The position numbers and the translations under genes were made by a program. This document shows positions 1,163-42,804 of a DNA stretch of 64,000 bases, piece after piece (positions within the stretch are counted from its first letter, which is position 1; every line of letters starts with the position of its first letter). The DNA lies in the NCBI RefSeq assembly GCF_000737315.1, contig NZ_JMCB01000021.1, positions 1-64,000 on the forward strand, read 5' to 3'. The stretch is from Hyalangium minutum. Lineage in GTDB: Bacteria > Myxococcota > Myxococcia > Myxococcales > Myxococcaceae. A model generated the notes under the pieces. That model made no database searches. It had not been told where the DNA came from and was given only the letters and a program-made list of their open reading frames with translations.

Positions 1163-3403
1163 CTACCGCAGGTACTGCCCGGTCAGCGAGCGCTTCGCTT
1201 TCACCAACTCCGCTGGCGTGCCCTCGAAGATCACCTCGCCGCCCTTGCTGCCCCCCTCAGGCCCCAGGTCGATGATCCAATCCGCGCTGCGGATGACGTC
1301 GAGGTTGTGCTCGATCACGATCACCGTGTTCCCGCCGTCGACGAGGCGATCGATGATCCCCATCAGGTGCGTGATATCGGACATGTGCAATCCCGTCGTC
1401 GGCTCGTCCATGACGTAGACGCTGCCGTCCTTATGCAGTTCGCTGGCGAGCTTGATGCGCTGGCACTCCCCGCCGGAAAGGGTGCTCAGCGGCTGGCCGA
1501 GCGTGAGGTACGCGAGCCCCACGTCGTGCATCGCCTGCAGCTTGCGAACGATCTCCTTGCGCTTTTGAAACAACTCCACCGCCTGCGCCACCGTCATCGC
1601 GAGCACATCGCTGATCGACTTCCCGTCGAGCTTGTACGCCAGCACGTCGTCCTTGAAACGGCGGCCCTGGCACACCTCGCACGGTGATTTGAACGCATCG
1701 AGGAACGAGAGATCGGTGTAGACCACTCCCGATCCGTTGCACGCTTCGCACGCGCCTTTCGAGTTGAAGCTGAACAGCCCCGCGTCCACCTTGTTGGCCG
1801 ACGCGAACGCCTTGCGCAGATCATCCATCACGCCGGTGTACGTTGCGGGGTTGCTGCGCGTGGAGGTTCCGACGGCGGACTGATCGATCACGATCGCGTC
1901 GGGATGCTGCACGAGGAACACATCGTTGATGAGCGAGCTCTTTCCTGAGCCCGCGACGCCGGTCACCGCGGTGAGCACGCCCTTGGGGATGTCGACGGAG
2001 ATGCTCTTCAGGTTGTTCGCGCGTGCGTTCTTGATGCGCAGCTGGCCGGTGGGTTTGCGCACATCCTTCTTGATCGGCAGCGCCTGCGTGAGATGGCGGC
2101 CGGTGAGCGTGTCGGATTTGAGAAGCTTTTCGTATGTGCCTTCGAAGACGATCGTCCCGCCGCTGCGGCCCGCGCCCGGCCCCACATCGACGATGTGATC
2201 GGCGGCTTCGATCACAGCGGGGTCGTGCTCGACGACGATCACGGTGTTGCCCTTGTCGCGCAGTTTCCCGAGCAGCTCGTTGAGGCGATGCACGTCGCGC
2301 GGGTGAAGGCCCACGCTCGGCTCGTCAAAGATGTACATCACATCTACGAGGCTGCTGCCGAGGTGCTTCACCATCCGCACGCGCTGCGATTCCCCGCCGG
2401 ACAGCGTGTCAGTCTCTCGGTCGAGGCTCAGGTATTCGAGCCCGATATCGACGATGGCCTGCAGCCGCTCGACGAGCGCATTCACGATCGGCCCGGCCTT
2501 GGGCTCTTTGATCGCGCGCACCACCTTCAACAGCTCGCCGACCTCCATCGACGACAATTCAGCGATGTTGTGGCCGTTGATCTTGCTCGCGAGTGCGGCG
2601 GGGTTCAAGCGCGCGCCCTTGCACGACGGACATTCGCGCGGCTTGAGGTACGGCATCACCGCTTTCTGCGTGCGCTCGCTGAGCGTCTTGATGTCGCGCT
2701 GCACGTACGAGCGTTCGATCTTGGCGATGACGCCGGCGTAGGTGAGGTTGATGGTCTTCCCGCCGAACTGCGCCTTGAACTTGCGATCCTTGCCGTGGAG
2801 CAGCAGCTCCATTTCGTCCTTCGTGAACTTGCTGAGCTTCTTGTCATTGTCGAAGAAGCCGCTCAACGTGTACGCCTGCACGTCCCAGTCGTTGAAGAAC
2901 GGGACCTGTACCGCGCCCTCATTGAGCGACTTGCTCATGTCGAGGAAGTCGTCGGAGACGACACCGACCTTCTTCCCGAGGCCATTGCAGTCGGGACACG
3001 CGCCGCGCGGATCGTTGAACGAATACGCGATCGCCCCGCCCGCCGACGGCTTACCCACGCGCGAGAACAGCAGGCGCAGCACGCCATGGATATCGGTCAC
3101 CGTGCCGACGGTGGAATGCGATCCGCCGCCGAGCCGCTTCTGGTCGACGATCACCGCCATGGTGAGGTTTTCGATCGCGTCGGCGTCGGGCTGCGGGTAC
3201 TTGGGTAGGAAGTTGCGGATGAACAGCGAGAAGTTCTCGTAGAGCTGGCGCTGGGCCTCCGTCGCCAGCGTGTCGAACACGATCGACGATTTCCCCGAGC
3301 CCGAGACGCCGGTGAAGATCGTGAGCTTGCGCTTGGGAATCTGGAGCGTGACGTCCTTGAGGTTGTTTTCGCGCGCGCCGCGGATGGAGATGAACTCGGT
3401 CAT
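1163..3403 (-). CDS. Class II UvrA-like ABC ATPase (DrrC/Ecm16-type), 746 aa
   Basis: Two Walker A motifs ([16 protein letters not shown]), two LSGGE signatures and CxxC zinc motifs; about 200 aa shorter than canonical UvrA. Confidence 0.9.
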
Positions 3404-3587: not shown

Positions 3588-4439
3588 TCAGTGCGCGGCG
3601 CCGGTATGAGCGGTAATGGCATTGGCGATGGTGGGCCAGTCCGTCTCGTGCAGCTCGTGCCCTGCATCCTCGAGCGTGACCAGCTTCGCGCCCGGCACCG
3701 CCCGGCTCAGGGCGATGCCATGCGCGTAAGCAACGACGGGGTCCAGCGCGCCGTGGATGATGAGCAGGGGCGCCTGGAGCTCATGGGTCCGGCCGTACCA
3801 GCGCTCGCCGCCCGTGAGGACCGTATAGTTCATCATGCTCTGGAGGTTGTGCGAGCGACGGAACTCCGCCGCTGCCACGCGGCGCGCCAGGGCCTCATCG
3901 TAAGGCCGGCGCCCGCTGGAGTTCAGGCGCCCCGCCTTCACCATGAACTCGAGAACGGCGGCCTCGTCGCTCCAGTCCAGGGTGGCCGCCGTCCCGAAGT
4001 GTGCGAGCAGCGCCGGTGAGAGGGGCGGGGGCGTGAAGCCCAGATCGCCGAGAAACTCCGCGCTGATCAGTGTGAGGGAGAGGACTCGCTCCGGAGCCTT
4101 CAATGCCACGATTTGCGAGAGCATCCCCCCGAGTGACATCCCCACCAGGTGGGCTCGCGCGAGGCCATAGCCGTCCAGCACGGCGATGACGTCATCCGCG
4201 AGGTCATCGACGGTGTAGCCCGGGGCTCCCGGGGGATACGTTGTGGAGCGGCCCATGTCGCGCTGGTCGTAGCGGACAACAAACCGCCCCGCCGCGACCA
4301 GCATGGCGACCAGCCCATCGGGCCACCACTTCATGGACGACATCGCTCCCATGATCAGGAGGATGGGCGGGTCGTCCGGCGAACCAAAGGACTCCGTGCA
4401 GAGACGGATGCCACGGCTTTCAATCCAGCGCTCGGTCAT
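3588..4439 (-). CDS. Alpha/beta-hydrolase, EstT/EstX-like putative macrolide esterase (283 aa)
   Basis: Start MTERW follows a GGAGGAAGGGG RBS. Triad motifs GMSLGG, HGALD and GHELH. LCTESFG, RYDxRDxGxST, AEFxR and GHELHxxDW match EstT as I recall it. Confidence 0.85.
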   Translation of the reverse strand: MTERWIESRGIRLCTESFGSPDDPPILLIMGAMSSMKWWPDGLVAMLVAAGRFVVRYDQRDMGRSTTYPPGAPGYTVDDLADDVIAVLDGYGLARAHLVGMSLGGMLSQIVALKAPERVLSLTLISAEFLGDLGFTPPPLSPALLAHFGTAATLDWSDEAAVLEFMVKAGRLNSSGRRPYDEALARRVAAAEFRRSHNLQSMMNYTVLTGGERWYGRTHELQAPLLIIHGALDPVVAYAHGIALSRAVPGAKLVTLEDAGHELHETDWPTIANAITAHTGAAH

Positions 4440-4482
4440 GTGAACCCCTTCCTCCGTGCAACGTGTCATTCCGCAGGAAGAA

Positions 4483-4511
4483 TTAATAACCGACACGACG
4501 GTTATAAACAA
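4483..4511 (-). promoter_or_regulatory. Sigma70-type promoter with an MphR-type operator filling the spacer
   Basis: Minus strand reads TTGTTT-ATAACCGTCGTGTCGGT(17)-TATTAA. Inverted repeat ATAACCG-N6-CGGTTAT at 4486-4505. Confidence 0.8.
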
Positions 4512-4555
4512 GTCTGGATGGGGATCTTGGCCTCCGGACAGCATGAAGGGGCGGA

Positions 4556-5134
4556 TCAGCGCTTCGGAAGCTCGAAGGACTCGTGGGGGAACAGCAGACC
4601 GAGCACCCGGCGCACGCGCTCCAGCACATAGCGGGTCAGCGAGGGCTCCCGCTCCACCATCCACTGCATCGTCGCACCTGCGATGACGTCCTGCAGCACG
4701 GCGGCGACTTCATTCCGCTCGGCCATCTTGGGAAGCCGGGCGGCGATGGCATCGCGGACCATCAGGTTCCTTTCGAGGGCCATGCGCCTCAGGGTGGTGT
4801 CTCTCAGGTCCTGCCAAGCGAGGAGCAGGTAGCTGTCGAGTCCCTCCCCCGTGCCCATGCCGGAGATGATCTCCGTCAGGAAGCGCCAGAGTCCCTGTGC
4901 TCCCACTTCCACGGGCATGCTCGCGAGATAGTCGCGCCGCTGCGCACCCGAGCGCTCCATGACACGCCGGTACAGCGTGTCCTTGTTCTTGAAGCGCTGG
5001 ATGAGCGCGGCGCGGGACATTCCCAGCTCGGCGGCCACGTCATTCAAGGTGAACCCGGCCAGCCCGCGACGCAGCAGCACTTCCATGGTGGCATCGAGAA
5101 TGGCTTCGTCGCTGTGCAGCTTGGGCCGGGGCAC
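4556..5134 (-). CDS. mphR: TetR-family repressor, MphR(A) homolog (192 aa; GTG start)
   Basis: MPRPKLHSD..., SRAALIQRF, GAQGLWRFL, VIAGATMQW and LLFP are colinear with MphR(A) as recalled (MPRPKLKSD, SRAALIQRF, GPQGLWEFL, VIAGATMQW). Confidence 0.85.
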   Translation of the reverse strand: MPRPKLHSDEAILDATMEVLLRRGLAGFTLNDVAAELGMSRAALIQRFKNKDTLYRRVMERSGAQRRDYLASMPVEVGAQGLWRFLTEIISGMGTGEGLDSYLLLAWQDLRDTTLRRMALERNLMVRDAIAARLPKMAERNEVAAVLQDVIAGATMQWMVEREPSLTRYVLERVRRVLGLLFPHESFELPKR

Positions 5135-5141
5135 GGCCACG

Positions 5142-5156
5142 GTAACTATCACGTCG
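5142..5156 (-). promoter_or_regulatory. Second, degenerate MphR operator (possible autoregulation)
   Basis: Minus strand CGACGTGATAGTTAC lies just upstream of the GTG at 5134; 13/15 match to the recalled mph(A) operator segment CGACGTGACTGTTAC. Confidence 0.55.
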
Positions 5157-5516
5157 CGGAAGCGAGGAACGCATCCGATCCGGGGCATGGGAGCATCGAG
5201 GGCGCGGTGCGCGCGTGGGGAGCCGCCAGCCCGGAGTCAGGCAAGGTCGTGGCACGGGTCGATCAGACGCGCGAGGGCGCTCGCTAACGGCCAGCGCCTC
5301 GAGCGCCGTGCTGTGGATGCGCTCCAGCCGGGCCTGCAGCAGTACAGCCCGAGTATGGGATTGCGGAGCTCCCTCTGGCGTGGTGACAACCCTCACCAGG
5401 GAGAGGACGGCAGTCACCGGCTCGCAGCCCCTCTCTAGCCCGTGGCGCGCCTCCCTCCTATCCCCAGGCACGCGCAAGCCCTTGGAATCAGGCCGGTCTG
5501 CTCGACCCCAGCTTCG

Positions 5517-6284: not shown

Positions 6285-9200
6285 CTACCAGGGGCAGTCC
6301 ACCACTTCCACGGTGCGGGTGAGGGGCGCGGCGGCATTGCCTCCACTGTCCGTGACGGCATAACGCAGGGTGTACAGGCCCTCAGCCCAGCCGTTCACAT
6401 CGCCGGTGCGGGAGACGGTAGCGCTCAAGTTCCCGTAACACGCGTCCGTGGCCTCCACTCCTGGATCGACCCACCCGGTGCCGCACGTGTGCACCATGTG
6501 CGCCGGTCCGCGGAGCATGAGCGCCGGTGGCGTCCGGTCATCCACGTGCACCGTGCGGATGGCTCCCACCGTGAGCCCGGTGGAGTCCCACGCCAAGTAC
6601 TGCACGGAGTAGGTGCCCTCGGCCGCGGTGTCCGGTCCCGGCCCGTAAGCATCTTGGCCGGAGTTGTAGCGGTGAACCTCCAGTGGGCTCCCGCATCCGT
6701 CCGCGGCGGTCGCGCCCAGGTCGACATACACGTCCTGCCCGCACTCAAGCGTCAGCTCACTGTCGCCGTTGAGACTCAAGGAGAGCGGACCCGAGTCCTC
6801 CACCACCTGCACCGTGCGGGGTGCGCCCTGAGCCACGTTGCCCGAGGCATCGCGCACCCGGTAGCTCACTGCGTAGGTGCCAGGGACGCTCGGGTTCAGG
6901 CCCACCACCTCCACCCGGTGGGTGAGATCTCCCTGGCACACGTCCGTGGCCACCACACCGGCAGTTGCCGAGCGGCCACAGCCCACCACCAGCGGATCCT
7001 CCCCCACGAGGGTGAGGGTGGGCGCCTGGGTATCCACCACCGAGACCTGCGTGGTGCAGGCCGTGGTGTTGCCGCCCACATCCCTGGCCGAGTACGTCAC
7101 GTCCGTCGTCCCGAGAGGATAGCTGGCCACTCCACCACCGGACTGCTGGGTCAGCTGGCAGCTGTCGGTTGCCACCGCTTGGGGCAGAGAGACGGCCGCG
7201 GCGCCCTGGCTGGAGCACTCGGCTGTCACCGCAGCCGGGCATGCGAGACCAGGTGCTTGCGTATCCACCACGCTCACTGGGAACGCGCAACGGGCCTGGT
7301 TGCCCTGGGCATCCGTCGCCGTGCACGTCACCGCCGTCGTCCCGTGCGCGAAGCGGCTGCCCGAGGTGGGGGTGCAGGTGACACTGGGGCTCGCCCCACA
7401 GTTGTCGGTGGCGCTGGGCGCATAGCTGGCCACAGCCCCGCCCGCGGAGCACTCGAGCGCAGGAGGCTGCGCGCACGTGATCTCGGGAGGCGTCGTGTCC
7501 TGCACGGTCACCATGGCCTGGCACGAGGCGCTCTGGCCATGCGCATCCGTGCACGTCAACGTCACCCGGTTCTGGCCCAGGGCATACGGGCAGTCCGGCG
7601 TCTGCACGCAGGTGACTTCGCCGCCGTCCGGATCATACGAGCCGTCATTCACGGACGCGCACCCAGCGCACGCACTGCTCGCTCCCACTACCTGGTTAAT
7701 GCACCGGGCCACGGGCGGACGGTTGACGCAGGCCGCCTCGCCGCACGAGGGACCATCTGCCGGATCATCCCAGACGAGCTGCTGGAAGCCCGTGGCGGGC
7801 TCGGGCAGCCCCGCGGTGAAGGCATACACCTGCACGGTGTTGCCGCAGGCCTGGAGCTGCACCGGAATGTGGAAGGGGTAGTCGATGCCACAGTTCTCGC
7901 ACAGCGTCACTTCGGGCCCGCCGTTGAGCCGGTACCACACGCGGTCGATCTCGGCCGGACGGCTCTTCACCACGCCCGTCACGATCTGCGAGGGACCGGA
8001 AGCACACGTCGGCTGGGGCGCGATGAGCACTGTCAGGGGAGGCACCAGCTTCATGCGCTGGCCGCAGCCAAGCGTGAACTGGATGGGCTGGAAGGTGGCC
8101 TGGTTGGTGCTGCCGTTGCTGTTGACCAGCATGGCGCCGGGCGTGAGCGTATAAATGCCCTCGGGCAAGGTGAAGCTCACCGAGCCCCGCGTCTGCGCGT
8201 AGGTGATGGCCTCGCTCTGCGGAATCCCCACGGCCGCGGGGATGCCCGAGGCCAGTCCCGTGACGGTGTAGTCCGCGGCGAGCCCCCGCCAGTCTGCCCC
8301 CCGGAAGCTGCCGGAGATGGCCGCTGTCGGGTTGAAGAAGGGCGTGTCTGCCGTGGAGAACTCGACCTGCACCTCGTTGAAGCAGTACTCGTGGTCCACG
8401 CGGTAGCGCTGCCCCGGCTGCAGCGGCGTGCTCGGGGTGTTCTGCTTCTTCTTCAGATCGAGGTACCCGTAGCGGAAGCGCGCCGGATCGTACTGCCCGG
8501 GACGGGTGACGAAGTTGTAGCCCTGGGTCCAGAAGCCCAGCCTCAGCAGATCCTGCCGCCAGGGGTGAGGCTCATCGTAGATATAGGGCAGGAGCTGCTC
8601 GTAGCCGGAGGACAGCTCTCCCGTCGAGGGAGAGAAGGCTCCAGGGAACGAGGTCGCCGCGCTGGCGGAGGATTGCCCCTCGGCCCGCAGCTGCGTGCTG
8701 TACCGAGCCACGGCGTAGAAGTCGGTGTTGTTGGGAATCCCGTCTTGATTCGTGTCGTAATCCGCCTCGAAGTTGAGGGCCTGGAGCGAGCTGTAGGCCC
8801 CCGGATGCGCGGTGACGTAAGGGTCCGCCAACCGGATGGCGCCATGGAAGTACGCCGGGTGCATGACGAACGGGTAGCGCGTCTCACCGTTGATCTGCCG
8901 GGTCAGCGGCACGGCGGGTCCCGCCACGACGCTGGAGGGGCTCGCGTTGCGCGTCTCGAAGAAGCTGAACTCACGCCCCCGGCGCGCGTAGCCCCTGCCG
9001 CGCAAGGAGCTGTAGCTGCCGGGAACCATGTTCGGCAGTGTCCACCAGCGGCTGGGATCCGAGCCGGGGGCTCGCGAGTCCTGAGGGAAGTTCAGGAGGT
9101 GGTAGCGCAAGTTGTTGTCAGGTCCGCCGGAGAGGACGATCTGCCGGTATGTCTGGGACGGCTCGCCCACGATGTCCCAGGGGCCGGTCAGGGCCCCGCG

Positions 9201-10022
9201 CTGTGAGACGCCCGGATCCGGCACGCACACCTGGACGAGCTCGTCACAGCCGACGCTCCAATTCATGTTTTGGAGATAGGAGCGCGTGTCCGTGTATTCG
9301 CTCGTTCCCAGCCGGTAGGTGAGCGTGGAGGCCGTGCCGCTCGAGCCTCCCTTCACGTAGGAGAGATAGGCCCCGCTGGGATGGCGGCGCAGCTGCAGCC
9401 CGTTCCAATTGACCTGATCCACGGGCACAGCCGTGGCGCACGTCGCGTCCGTTCCGAATCGGAATGCGATGGCCCCCAGGCACTCCGAGAAGTCCAGCTC
9501 GGTGGGCAGCGGCTGCTCGCTCCGAGGCCGCACCTGGACGCCCTGGGCCTGAGCGAAGGTATAGAGGCGGTAGTCGTATTGCGCGTTCCACACAAAGCGA
9601 GGCAGGACCTCGTAGGTGACGCCGCCAGCCCCACCGGCTCCCGCCTCCACGGACATCTCGAAGCTGAAGCCGCGCAGGTTGAGCTGGCCCGGCAGCTCCG
9701 TACGCGCCGTGAACCCGGTGGGACTGGTGCTCGTCGCCGTCACCAACCCGATCCGGTTGGTGTCCGTGTTGAGCAACTGGAGGATCGCCGGGTTCTGGTT
9801 GGTGAAGCGCACCTGTCCGCGGATGGTGTTGGGCTCGAGCACCACGCCCCCGGAGCCCTCGTCCAGCATCCCGGACTGCTCCGCCGGAGCCGGTTCCCGG
9901 AACGCTTCGGAGCCCGGGTCACACGCCGTGGTGGCTCCACACAGCCACAGCATCAGGGCCCATCCACGCGTGCTTCGTGTCAGGGTAGGTGGAATAAATG
10001 CTTGTCTATTCCTGGGTGTCAC
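6285..10022 (-). CDS. Large surface lipoprotein with C-terminal HYR and DUF5011-type Ig-like repeats (1245 aa)
   Basis: Signal peptide with ATTAC lipobox; repeated DTxPPxITC/ATDxC/VxVxD motifs; ends VVDCPW. Start uncertain. Confidence 0.85.
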   Translation of the reverse strand: MTPRNRQAFIPPTLTRSTRGWALMLWLCGATTACDPGSEAFREPAPAEQSGMLDEGSGGVVLEPNTIRGQVRFTNQNPAILQLLNTDTNRIGLVTATSTSPTGFTARTELPGQLNLRGFSFEMSVEAGAGGAGGVTYEVLPRFVWNAQYDYRLYTFAQAQGVQVRPRSEQPLPTELDFSECLGAIAFRFGTDATCATAVPVDQVNWNGLQLRRHPSGAYLSYVKGGSSGTASTLTYRLGTSEYTDTRSYLQNMNWSVGCDELVQVCVPDPGVSQRGALTGPWDIVGEPSQTYRQIVLSGGPDNNLRYHLLNFPQDSRAPGSDPSRWWTLPNMVPGSYSSLRGRGYARRGREFSFFETRNASPSSVVAGPAVPLTRQINGETRYPFVMHPAYFHGAIRLADPYVTAHPGAYSSLQALNFEADYDTNQDGIPNNTDFYAVARYSTQLRAEGQSSASAATSFPGAFSPSTGELSSGYEQLLPYIYDEPHPWRQDLLRLGFWTQGYNFVTRPGQYDPARFRYGYLDLKKKQNTPSTPLQPGQRYRVDHEYCFNEVQVEFSTADTPFFNPTAAISGSFRGADWRGLAADYTVTGLASGIPAAVGIPQSEAITYAQTRGSVSFTLPEGIYTLTPGAMLVNSNGSTNQATFQPIQFTLGCGQRMKLVPPLTVLIAPQPTCASGPSQIVTGVVKSRPAEIDRVWYRLNGGPEVTLCENCGIDYPFHIPVQLQACGNTVQVYAFTAGLPEPATGFQQLVWDDPADGPSCGEAACVNRPPVARCINQVVGASSACAGCASVNDGSYDPDGGEVTCVQTPDCPYALGQNRVTLTCTDAHGQSASCQAMVTVQDTTPPEITCAQPPALECSAGGAVASYAPSATDNCGASPSVTCTPTSGSRFAHGTTAVTCTATDAQGNQARCAFPVSVVDTQAPGLACPAAVTAECSSQGAAAVSLPQAVATDSCQLTQQSGGGVASYPLGTTDVTYSARDVGGNTTACTTQVSVVDTQAPTLTLVGEDPLVVGCGRSATAGVVATDVCQGDLTHRVEVVGLNPSVPGTYAVSYRVRDASGNVAQGAPRTVQVVEDSGPLSLSLNGDSELTLECGQDVYVDLGATAADGCGSPLEVHRYNSGQDAYGPGPDTAAEGTYSVQYLAWDSTGLTVGAIRTVHVDDRTPPALMLRGPAHMVHTCGTGWVDPGVEATDACYGNLSATVSRTGDVNGWAEGLYTLRYAVTDSGGNAAAPLTRTVEVVDCPW

Positions 10023-40943: not shown

Positions 40944-42804
40944 CGACCGGCAGCTGCATGGCGCGCTCGCGGTCCAGGTCCAGGTTGCCGATGTGCAGCG
41001 ACAGGGGCGACTGCACCCACTTGTAGATGGACTGGAGGAAGAGCCGGACGAACTTGTCCGCGTAGCCCTGGAGCCGCGCGGGCTCGACCTCGGGGAACAT
41101 GGCGGTGAGGGCCTGCACCAGCTCGGCGGGCACCAGCTTCTCGCCCGCGAAGAGGTAGAAGCACGCGTCCAGGATGGGGAAGGGCATCAGCTCCTCCTCA
41201 CCTACCTGGTTGTGCGCGAGCTCAGGACCCGCAGGCTTGGCCAGCACCTTCTTGATGCCCTCGTAGCCTGTTTTCTCCTGCAGGTAGTCCAGCAGGTACA
41301 TGACCACCGTCTTGGGCACGTTGGCGATGACGGCCAGGGCGCCCATCAGGTCTCCGCCGATGGTGGTGTAGCCCACGGACTTCTCGCTCATGTTGCCCGT
41401 CTGCAGGAACAGGCCGCCTGCCGAGTTGGACCAGTTCCACATGCGCTGGGCGCGCAGGCGGGCTTGGACGTTCTGCTCCGTAACCGCCGTGACGGGTTGC
41501 TCCCCGAGCATCTGCTTGGCCACGGCCAGCTCGCGGTCGAAGGCCTCCTCGATGGGGATGACCTGGAACGGGACGCCGAGCTCGCGCGAGATGGTCTCCG
41601 CGGCATCACGGGTGGCATCGCTCGAGTAGCGGCTGGGCATGTAGAAGGCCCGCAGCAGTGAGCCCGGGTTCTCGGGCCGCACCTTCTTCGCGTACCGGTG
41701 GGCAATGAGCAGCGTCAGCAGCGAGTCCCGGCCTCCCGACAGGGCGATGCCGATGACCTTGAAGGCGCGCGTCTTCTCGAAGTAGTCGCCCACGCCCAGC
41801 GCCAGGGCGTCGAGCACGTCCTCGCACAGCGCCTCGCGGGCGGGGCGGCGCTGGTCCGGCCCTGGCAGGAAGAAGCTGCGGTGCGCCGGCACCGGGTAGG
41901 TGAGCTTGTCGCGCTTGCTCTGGAAGACCTTCGTGCAGTCCAGCGCGGGCACCGGCTTGCCGCCACGGGCCACCCACGCCTCGTAGTCGCCGCGCCACGT
42001 GGTGTTCTCCGTGCGCAGGCGCATGGTGCGATCCAGATCCACCACTGCCGCCGAGTAGCCTTCCTGGAAGCGCGGCGTCTCGTGGACGTGGCGGCCGTTC
42101 TGGTTCAGGAAGCCGCCGCCGTCGAAGATGATGCCGTCATTGCTGCCCAGCGCATTGGCGTAGGCGATGGTGCACTGGTGGTCCGCGGCGCGCGTGGCGA
42201 TGAGCTCCCGTCGCGTGTCCACGAAGCCGATGCGGAACGGCGAGGCGGACAGGTTCACCACCAGCTCGCCACCCGAGTACGTGCGCCGGCGCTGCGGCCC
42301 GTCCGCGCTCCAGATGTCCTCGCAGACCTCGGGGGCCAGGGTGCCGAAGTCGAAGCGGAACAGGTAGTCACCCAGCGGCACGTCGCGGTGCACCTCGGCC
42401 ATGCCCGGGTAGCCGCGGGACCAGGTGCGTGCCTCGTAGAAGATGCTGTACGTGGGCAGCTTCTCCTTGGGCACCAGCCCCAGCACCTGGCCGCTGGCCA
42501 CCACCGCCGCGCAGTTGAGGCGCAGTCCCTGGTGGGCCACCGCCACGCCCACCACGAAGACGGTGGACAGGCTGGCCGTCTCCCGTGCGAAGCGCTCCAG
42601 CTCCGGCCACTGGTGGTCGACGAAGCCCTGCCACTGAATGAGATCCTCAGCCGGGTAGCCGCCGATGACTTGCTCCGGGAAGAGGCCCACGGTGACGTCA
42701 TCCGCCGCCATCTTCCGCGCCAGCGTGAGCACCCGCTCCATATTGCGCGTGAAGGCGCCCACGGTGGTGTTGACGCTGGCGATCCCTACCTTGACGAGCC
42801 GCAT
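40912..42804 (-). CDS. nadE: Glutamine-dependent NAD+ synthase
   Basis: Nitrilase domain (FPE, K, CED); SGGRDS, ENVQAR-like NVQAR and GNMSEKSVGYTT. Confidence 0.93.
   Translation of the reverse strand: MRLVKVGIASVNTTVGAFTRNMERVLTLARKMAADDVTVGLFPEQVIGGYPAEDLIQWQGFVDHQWPELERFARETASLSTVFVVGVAVAHQGLRLNCAAVVASGQVLGLVPKEKLPTYSIFYEARTWSRGYPGMAEVHRDVPLGDYLFRFDFGTLAPEVCEDIWSADGPQRRRTYSGGELVVNLSASPFRIGFVDTRRELIATRAADHQCTIAYANALGSNDGIIFDGGGFLNQNGRHVHETPRFQEGYSAAVVDLDRTMRLRTENTTWRGDYEAWVARGGKPVPALDCTKVFQSKRDKLTYPVPAHRSFFLPGPDQRRPAREALCEDVLDALALGVGDYFEKTRAFKVIGIALSGGRDSLLTLLIAHRYAKKVRPENPGSLLRAFYMPSRYSSDATRDAAETISRELGVPFQVIPIEEAFDRELAVAKQMLGEQPVTAVTEQNVQARLRAQRMWNWSNSAGGLFLQTGNMSEKSVGYTTIGGDLMGALAVIANVPKTVVMYLLDYLQEKTGYEGIKKVLAKPAGPELAHNQVGEEELMPFPILDACFYLFAGEKLVPAELVQALTAMFPEVEPARLQGYADKFVRLFLQSIYKWVQSPLSLHIGNLDLDRERAMQLPVVTGSEWTKKA

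Follow-up and report, generated by a model that had tools for sequence, protein, structure and literature searches.

Results

Genes and features of the locus

The window, i.e. the whole stretch of 64,000 nucleotides (64 kb) that was analyzed, carries on its minus strand a gene for a TetR-family repressor, followed in tandem by a gene for an alpha/beta-hydrolase. A short intergenic region with a palindrome separates them, and the individual features are as follows.

5135 to 5153, minus strand: conserved island CGTGATAG(T/G)TAC(C/G)GTGGCC, directly ahead of the repressor GTG start
4556 to 5134, minus strand: mphR-like TetR-family repressor gene (phmmer, tblastn, Pfam, alignment)
4440 to 4555, minus strand: intergenic region from the repressor gene to the esterase gene, 116 bp (direct reading)
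4506 to 4511, minus strand: -35-like hexamer TTGTTT (TTG conserved across the family promoters and the myxobacterial orthologues)
4505 to 4489, minus strand: 17-nt spacer ATAACCGTCGTGTCGGT (direct reading)
4486 to 4505, no strand: predicted MphR-type operator ATAACCGTCGTGTCGGTTAT, a 20-bp palindrome with perfect 7-bp arms and a 6-bp centre (uniqueness, mph(A) register, family matrix)
4482 to 4488, minus strand: -10-like TATTAAT, with the hexamer TATTAA at 4488 to 4483 (position of TATwwAT in the family)
4445 to 4455, minus strand: Shine-Dalgarno-like GGAGGAAGGGG, with 5 nt between its end and the esterase ATG (direct reading)
3588 to 4439, minus strand: EstX/EstT-like alpha/beta-hydrolase, putative macrolide esterase, 283 aa, ATG at 4439 (phmmer, Pfam, NCBIfam)

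The repressor gene starts with GTG at 5134 (MPRPKLHSDE..., 192 aa) and ends with TGA at 4558-4556; an alternative GTG at 5140 would give a protein of 194 aa beginning with MAVPRPKL. A phmmer search returned MphR(A) (PDB 3frq/3g56) with an E value of 6.3e-43, residues 1-187 aligning on residues 4-190 of 3frq, and tblastn gave 45% identity to mphR(A) of E. coli plasmids. Pfam TetR_N was matched with an E value of 1.7e-12 (47.3 bits, cut-off 24), and the closest named homologues of the regulator were found in Pyxidicoccus and Myxococcus. When 19 members, MphR(A) among them, were aligned, no or almost no variation was seen in the N-terminal RPKL and in the recognition helix SRAALIQRF (G-SRAALIQRF). 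As the DNA-reading residues are common to the family, the same DNA specificity as for MphR(A) is expected. The identity of the ligand pocket to that of MphR(A) is put at only about 45%, so that the inducer could be another macrolide class or another molecule.

For the esterase, the best phmmer matches among solved structures were EstX (PDB 11tv, E value 2e-91) and EstT (E value 1.3e-77), both of which aligned end to end. The protein is 51.6% identical to the product of plasmid-borne estX, matches Pfam Abhydrolase_1 (E value 1.1e-26) and shares fold and length with EstX and EstT; its GxSxG nucleophile motif (GMSLGG) and the C-terminal GHELH with the catalytic histidine align with both enzymes. 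It scored below every curated NCBIfam cut-off (macro_16_ester 357.7 versus 420, estX 317.7 versus 600, EstT 293.6 versus 450), and consequently we name it EstX/EstT-like rather than a curated member, with a substrate that is not certain. The flanking genes that the first-pass annotation had assumed, an MphR(A) homologue (E 6e-43, PDB 3frq) and an EstX/EstT-like esterase (E 2e-91, PDB 11tv), are thereby confirmed. EstX and EstT were characterized between 2023 and 2026 (PMC9974460, PMC11214618, PMC13389593; PDB 11tv, 11tu), and the EstX/EstT papers searched name neither MphR nor another dedicated regulator. The listed plasmid estX genes are annotated beside aminoglycoside-resistance genes (aadA, aac), whereas the gene of the window is predicted to have a dedicated repressor and operator.

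Two neighbours of the gene pair were also inspected. Starting 185 bp past the esterase and on the same strand, a gene at 1163-3403 (minus strand) codes for a UvrA-like ABC ATPase of 746 aa with ABC_tran and UvrA DNA-binding domains; as it is shorter than canonical UvrA, a UvrA paralogue is possible. The scan revealed no operator-like site ahead of this gene. Upstream of the pair, an ORF of 1245 aa at 6285-10022 (minus strand) contains HYR and bacterial surface Ig-like domains and appears unrelated.

The predicted operator-promoter sequence

Direct reading of 4300-4700 on the minus strand gives, from 4511 to 4483, TTGTTT, the spacer ATAACCGTCGTGTCGGT and TATTAA, preceded by ...CCAGAC and followed by TTCTTCC.... 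This is letter for letter, and at the same coordinates, the arrangement that the first-pass annotation had described together with the inverted repeat ATAACCG-N6-CGGTTAT. The repeat at 4486-4505 has no arm mismatch, and its arms lengthen to 10 nt (4483-4492 and 4499-4508) at 90% complementarity. It begins 50 nt past the repressor stop codon and lies 46 nt ahead of the esterase ATG. The first three bases of the -10-like element are the last three of the operator, and depending on whether TATTAA or ATTAAT is taken as the -10 hexamer the spacer comprises 17 or 18 bp.

The exact pattern ATAACCG-N6-CGGTTAT occurs a single time in the 64-kb window and in none of 100 dinucleotide-preserving shuffles, and with up to three mismatches one extra, unrelated match appears in the window. 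The GC content falls to 0.565 at 4401-4600 compared with 0.65-0.70 in the flanks, in agreement with the AT-rich patch in GC-rich DNA that had been noted before. A further near-match, TAACCGCCGTGACGGGTT at 41481-41498, was dismissed, as it carries 4 mismatches in 14 positions, lies within long ORFs and belongs to a class whose frequency is within chance expectation.

Comparison with the E. coli mph(A) promoter

In the mph(A) system a dimer of MphR(A) on the palindrome in the mph(A) promoter blocks RNA polymerase, which is the known mechanism of this repressor. Noguchi et al. (2000, J Bacteriol 182:5052) reportedly described this repressor along with the promoter-operator region of E. coli mph(A)-mrx-mphR(A). 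On the E. coli plasmid NZ_CP075720 (locus L001, carrying mph(A)-mrx(A)-mphR(A)) the promoter reads GGATTGAATATAACCGACGTGACTGTTACATTTAGG, and the sequence given in the first-pass annotation is identical to it. The mph(A) ATG follows 40 nt beyond the operator-like 20-mer. An ungapped comparison with the window yielded 4/6 identical positions in the -35, 14/17 in the spacer and 2/6 in the -10, in total 20/29, which reproduces the spacer identity claimed earlier. The claimed equal placement of the operator between -35 and -10 holds as well: the dyad axis falls at the same step, between CG and TG, in both sequences.

Both systems share a TetR-family repressor with homology over its full length (45% identity, recognition helix identical), ATAACCG half-sites around a 6-bp centre nCGTGn in equal dyad register, and an operator, predicted in the window, between a TTGnnT -35-like hexamer and a -10-like hexamer starting with TA. 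Furthermore, in both the operator stands 40-46 nt ahead of the start codon of a gene for a macrolide-inactivating enzyme, putative in the window. They differ in the target, which is an alpha/beta-hydrolase esterase in the window but a phosphotransferase together with the Mrx transporter in the mph(A) operon, and in the gene order, the regulator gene being located upstream of the operator in the window but as the last gene of the regulated operon in the mph(A) system. The arms are perfect in the window, whereas the right arm of mph(A) is degenerate (CTGTTAC), and a chromosomal myxobacterial locus of about 67% GC stands against an enterobacterial plasmid or IS26 context. The MphR(A)/mph(A) module itself is already known; the window differs from it in the enzyme, the gene order and the near-consensus symmetric operator.

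The logic predicted for the window is also that of the tetR/tetA paradigm, in which a helix-turn-helix repressor binds as a homodimer to a palindrome that overlaps the promoter and is released by the drug. The two tet genes, however, are transcribed divergently and have tandem operators in common, with tetR under its own control, whereas the window shows tandem genes and a single predicted operator. The tet operator is unrelated to that of the window in sequence and spacing.

Survey of MphR-family loci

Via the family alignment, 80 MphR-family loci from other genomes were collected from contigs of one genome per species (593 kb) and scanned for the palindrome (14 specified bases, up to 2 mismatches), the expectation being derived from shuffles. 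In 73 of the 80 loci the palindrome was found beside the regulator gene, with 81 sites compared with 0.6 expected. The combination of palindrome and MphR-family repressor occurs in Myxococcota, Alpha-, Beta- and Gammaproteobacteria, Verrucomicrobia and other groups. In a locus of Allorhizobium (L023) the regulator is only 48% identical and the target is a radical-SAM gene, and yet 26 nt (TTGTTTATAACCGTCGTGTCGGTTAT) are identical to the window.

The family consensus ATAACCGACGCGTCGGTTAT is itself a perfect 20-bp palindrome. Scored with the family matrix, the site of the window reached 33.6 bits, the consensus 35.6 bits and the E. coli mph(A) site 26.8 bits; by this measure the E. coli site is a degenerate outlier and the predicted operator of the window is close to the family consensus. 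The first-pass annotation had suggested that the site could be a new, more symmetric operator for MphR biosensors. Its symmetry was confirmed by the perfect arms, yet it is not special to the window, as perfect arms were present in 20 of the 80 related loci. The idea of a better biosensor operator is therefore reasonable but not specific to the window, because many natural loci offer perfect palindromes.

The sites are located 2-70 nt upstream of the target gene, adjoining the regulator gene. Nine loci have an EstX-like esterase as target: that of the window, those of six myxobacteria and those of two alphaproteobacterial MAGs. The target is a Mph(A)-like phosphotransferase in 22 loci and a radical-SAM methyltransferase of the RlmN/Cfr family (~357 aa) in 35, and in 13 cases the site lies ahead of the regulator gene itself. 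Hence, three target mechanisms, phosphotransferase, esterase and RlmN/Cfr-like rRNA methyltransferase, appear behind one palindrome.

Of 51 distinct target promoters, 41 have TTG at a distance of exactly 3 nt upstream of the operator; counted singly, T, T and G occupy positions -6 to -4 in 48, 45 and 44 of the 51, respectively. Behind the operator, positions +1 to +4 read W-W-A-T; 43 of the 51 promoters have the A and 38 the T. Counted from operator position 17, TATwwAT follows in all 9 esterase-linked and in 22 of 30 rSAM-linked loci. The resulting family layout is cTTGwwT-ATAACCGaCGcGtCGGTTAT-wwAT, in which, as in mph(A), the operator is enclosed by a -35 TTG and a -10-like TATwwAT, with some overlap. 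The fixed distances of TTG and TATwwAT across the family support the presence of a promoter. The first-pass annotation had called the DNA evidence, namely the mph(A)-like promoter architecture, independent of the protein similarity. This applies to the functional support that it lends, but not to its evolutionary origin, because regulator and operator are inherited together.

The radical-SAM targets (loci L008-L012, L017, L020-L040, L044-L051, L068, L071 and L080; e.g. L023:4591-5737) belong to the RlmN/Cfr family of 23S rRNA A2503 methyltransferases, with 275 bits against the RlmN model (cut-off 290) and about 200 bits against the Cfr models. Near-identical copies (96-99%) were found in different genera and on two plasmids of Rhodobacter xanthinilyticus (99.4%, annotated as rlmN), suggesting a mobile, macrolide-inducible ribosome-modification gene. 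A literature search found no paper naming MphR together with cfr. A second side observation concerns loci L015, L016, L031, L036 and L041 (Devosia and relatives), which carry a perfect palindrome 8-10 nt before the regulator start (e.g. L015:3979-3998) and lack the TTG flank; most of them have a second, weaker copy ahead of a downstream radical-SAM gene. Palindromes at the regulator start point to autoregulation and a two-operator layout in these loci, unlike in the window.

Myxobacterial orthologues

The segment between regulator and esterase was aligned for the window, six myxobacterial and two alphaproteobacterial loci. Between the regulator stop codon and the esterase ATG of these nine loci only CTTGTTTATAACCGnCGyGTCGGTTATnAAT is conserved as a block, the remainder being unalignable, and in L007 the -35 reads TTGAAT as in mph(A). 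A purine-rich AGGAG-like block before the esterase is also present in the orthologues. Most myxobacterial orthologues retain the esterase start ATGACCGAGCG; in L004 and in L007 a single base just past the ATG differs. The mphR-esterase pair (3588-5134) is the only part common to the window and loci L002-L007, and none of the flanking genes of the window recurs in the other myxobacterial loci, which indicates that the cassette occupies variable, non-syntenic contexts. One of these loci, L005 (BNCN01000002.1), is titled Comamonas sp. KCTC 72670, although its mphR-est cassette is 81-83% identical to that of the window, like the myxobacterial loci; its regulator protein (P0014) bears the source name 'macrolide 2'-phosphotransferase' despite belonging to the TetR family. 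A taxonomic mislabel combined with a misannotation is probable for this record.

Upstream of the repressor gene, the island at 5135-5153 is the sole conserved block in the otherwise unalignable regions of seven myxobacterial loci. L007 has a 2-nt gap in it, so that the block is non-coding. The island is not an MphR-type operator and may be the core promoter of the repressor gene, a -10 or ribosome-binding element, or the mark of a near-leaderless start. A second operator ahead of the repressor gene was considered at ~5141-5158 (CGACGTGATAGTTAC), a stretch similar to the mph(A) operator in its right half, and was rejected, as the left half-site is missing. The full operator pattern gave no match upstream of the repressor with up to 4 mismatches. 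Among the orthologues only CGTGATAGgTAC..GTGGCC is conserved in this stretch, which is more likely a promoter or ribosome-binding element.

Alternative explanations of the palindrome

It has to be considered whether the esterase has a promoter of its own at all. Repressor and esterase gene lie on the same strand and 116 bp apart, and the repeat reaches into its flanks with arms of 10 nt, as would fit a roadblock: the MphR-like repressor would bind the palindrome and thereby halt transcription within a bicistronic mphR-est unit, the esterase would lack a promoter of its own, and what look like -35 and -10 elements would be the TTG and TAT-rich margins of an extended binding site. A scan for sigma-70 consensus promoters likewise reported none at 4483-4511. 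This negative result can be traced to TATTAA, which lacks a T at position 6, and to TTGTTT, which matches the consensus in only 3 of 6 positions; as the scanner equally missed the known mph(A) promoter, its result is uninformative and carries little weight. Against a roadblock, the identical layout precedes the first operon gene in mph(A)-type loci, where a promoter is required. Moreover, TTG at -6 to -4 and WWAT at +1 to +4 are not palindromic partners (AAACAA would be needed on the right) and yet are conserved in 44-48 and 38-43 of the 51 promoters, respectively, and the TTGnnn-17-TATnnn spacing agrees with the geometry of sigma-70 promoters. We therefore judge a roadblock without an esterase promoter to be unlikely.

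An inverted repeat some 50 nt past a stop codon could also be the intrinsic terminator of the mphR-like gene, acting as an RNA hairpin with a T-rich tail, and a terminator scan indeed flagged a 7-bp stem with a 6-nt loop and the tail TAATTCTTCC on the minus strand. The stem, however, contains only 3 G-C pairs, the fold energy is ordinary (z = -1.2, with 18 of 200 shuffles folding as well), and the T-rich tail is not kept in the orthologues. At least one arm pair is broken in 34 of the 48 distinct sites compared, and a compensatory double change was seen in just 2, while the arm sequence itself is conserved; such asymmetric variation of the arms without compensation points to a protein-binding site and not to an RNA hairpin. 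The same sequence is furthermore found before first genes of operons, as in mph(A), and before the regulator gene itself, positions in which a terminator makes no sense, so that this function is very improbable. For a palindrome that arose by chance or serves an unrelated factor, its likeness to mph(A) being coincidental, nothing speaks beyond the general frequency of short intergenic palindromes. With the pattern absent from all 100 shuffles and the sites of the 80 loci (81 versus 0.6 expected) always beside an MphR-family gene, this explanation is effectively refuted.

Discussion

Taking the evidence together, we are confident that 4486-4505 is the operator of the MphR-like repressor, embedded in the promoter of the esterase gene. 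The operator would fill the spacer between -35 and -10 and overlap the -10 element, with transcription presumably starting near 4476. With the inducer absent, a dimer of the repressor would occupy the palindrome and so keep RNA polymerase from the esterase promoter; a macrolide bound in the C-terminal pocket of the repressor would cause its release from the DNA, and the esterase would be made. The repressor gene, being located upstream of the regulated promoter, would have its own promoter without an operator and would not be autoregulated through 4486-4505, and it is probably expressed constitutively. As far as can be deduced from the sequence, the locus very likely represents a known type of macrolide-inducible resistance switch in which a different enzyme has come under control.

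A broader interpretation can be put forward tentatively, and we give it slightly less than an even chance: ATAACCGaCGcGtCGGTTAT together with an MphR-family repressor may form a portable macrolide-sensing cassette that crosses phyla and has been placed before three kinds of resistance genes, the pair in the window being tuned to the substrates of its esterase. If so, the pair in the window would sense esterase substrates, probably 16-membered macrolides, and macrolide biosensors would gain from it a symmetric operator of high affinity that already exists in nature, along with a new ligand specificity. The mph(A) promoter is in use in working biosensors (PMC13500785), whose MphR(A) operator is a degenerate copy of the perfect palindrome found across the family. 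Candidates for tighter or differently specific sensors are to be found among the natural symmetric operators and among the dozens of MphR homologues whose partner enzymes differ. A limited literature search found no paper on operators of MphR homologues, an absence that is no proof of such work being unpublished, and the biosensor papers searched contain no operator analysis of MphR homologues; a text search of the Snowprint paper (PMC10858194) listed no occurrence of 'MphR'.

With respect to the biology of these bacteria, the regulatory context is evidence for a putative macrolide-responsive EstX/EstT-like hydrolase in soil myxobacteria. As the esterase scores below the curated cut-offs, the operator context helps to annotate a poorly characterized branch of esterases. 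Finally, one sensor-operator module that stands before three kinds of enzymes may serve as a marker for inducible macrolide resistance genes in environmental genomes.
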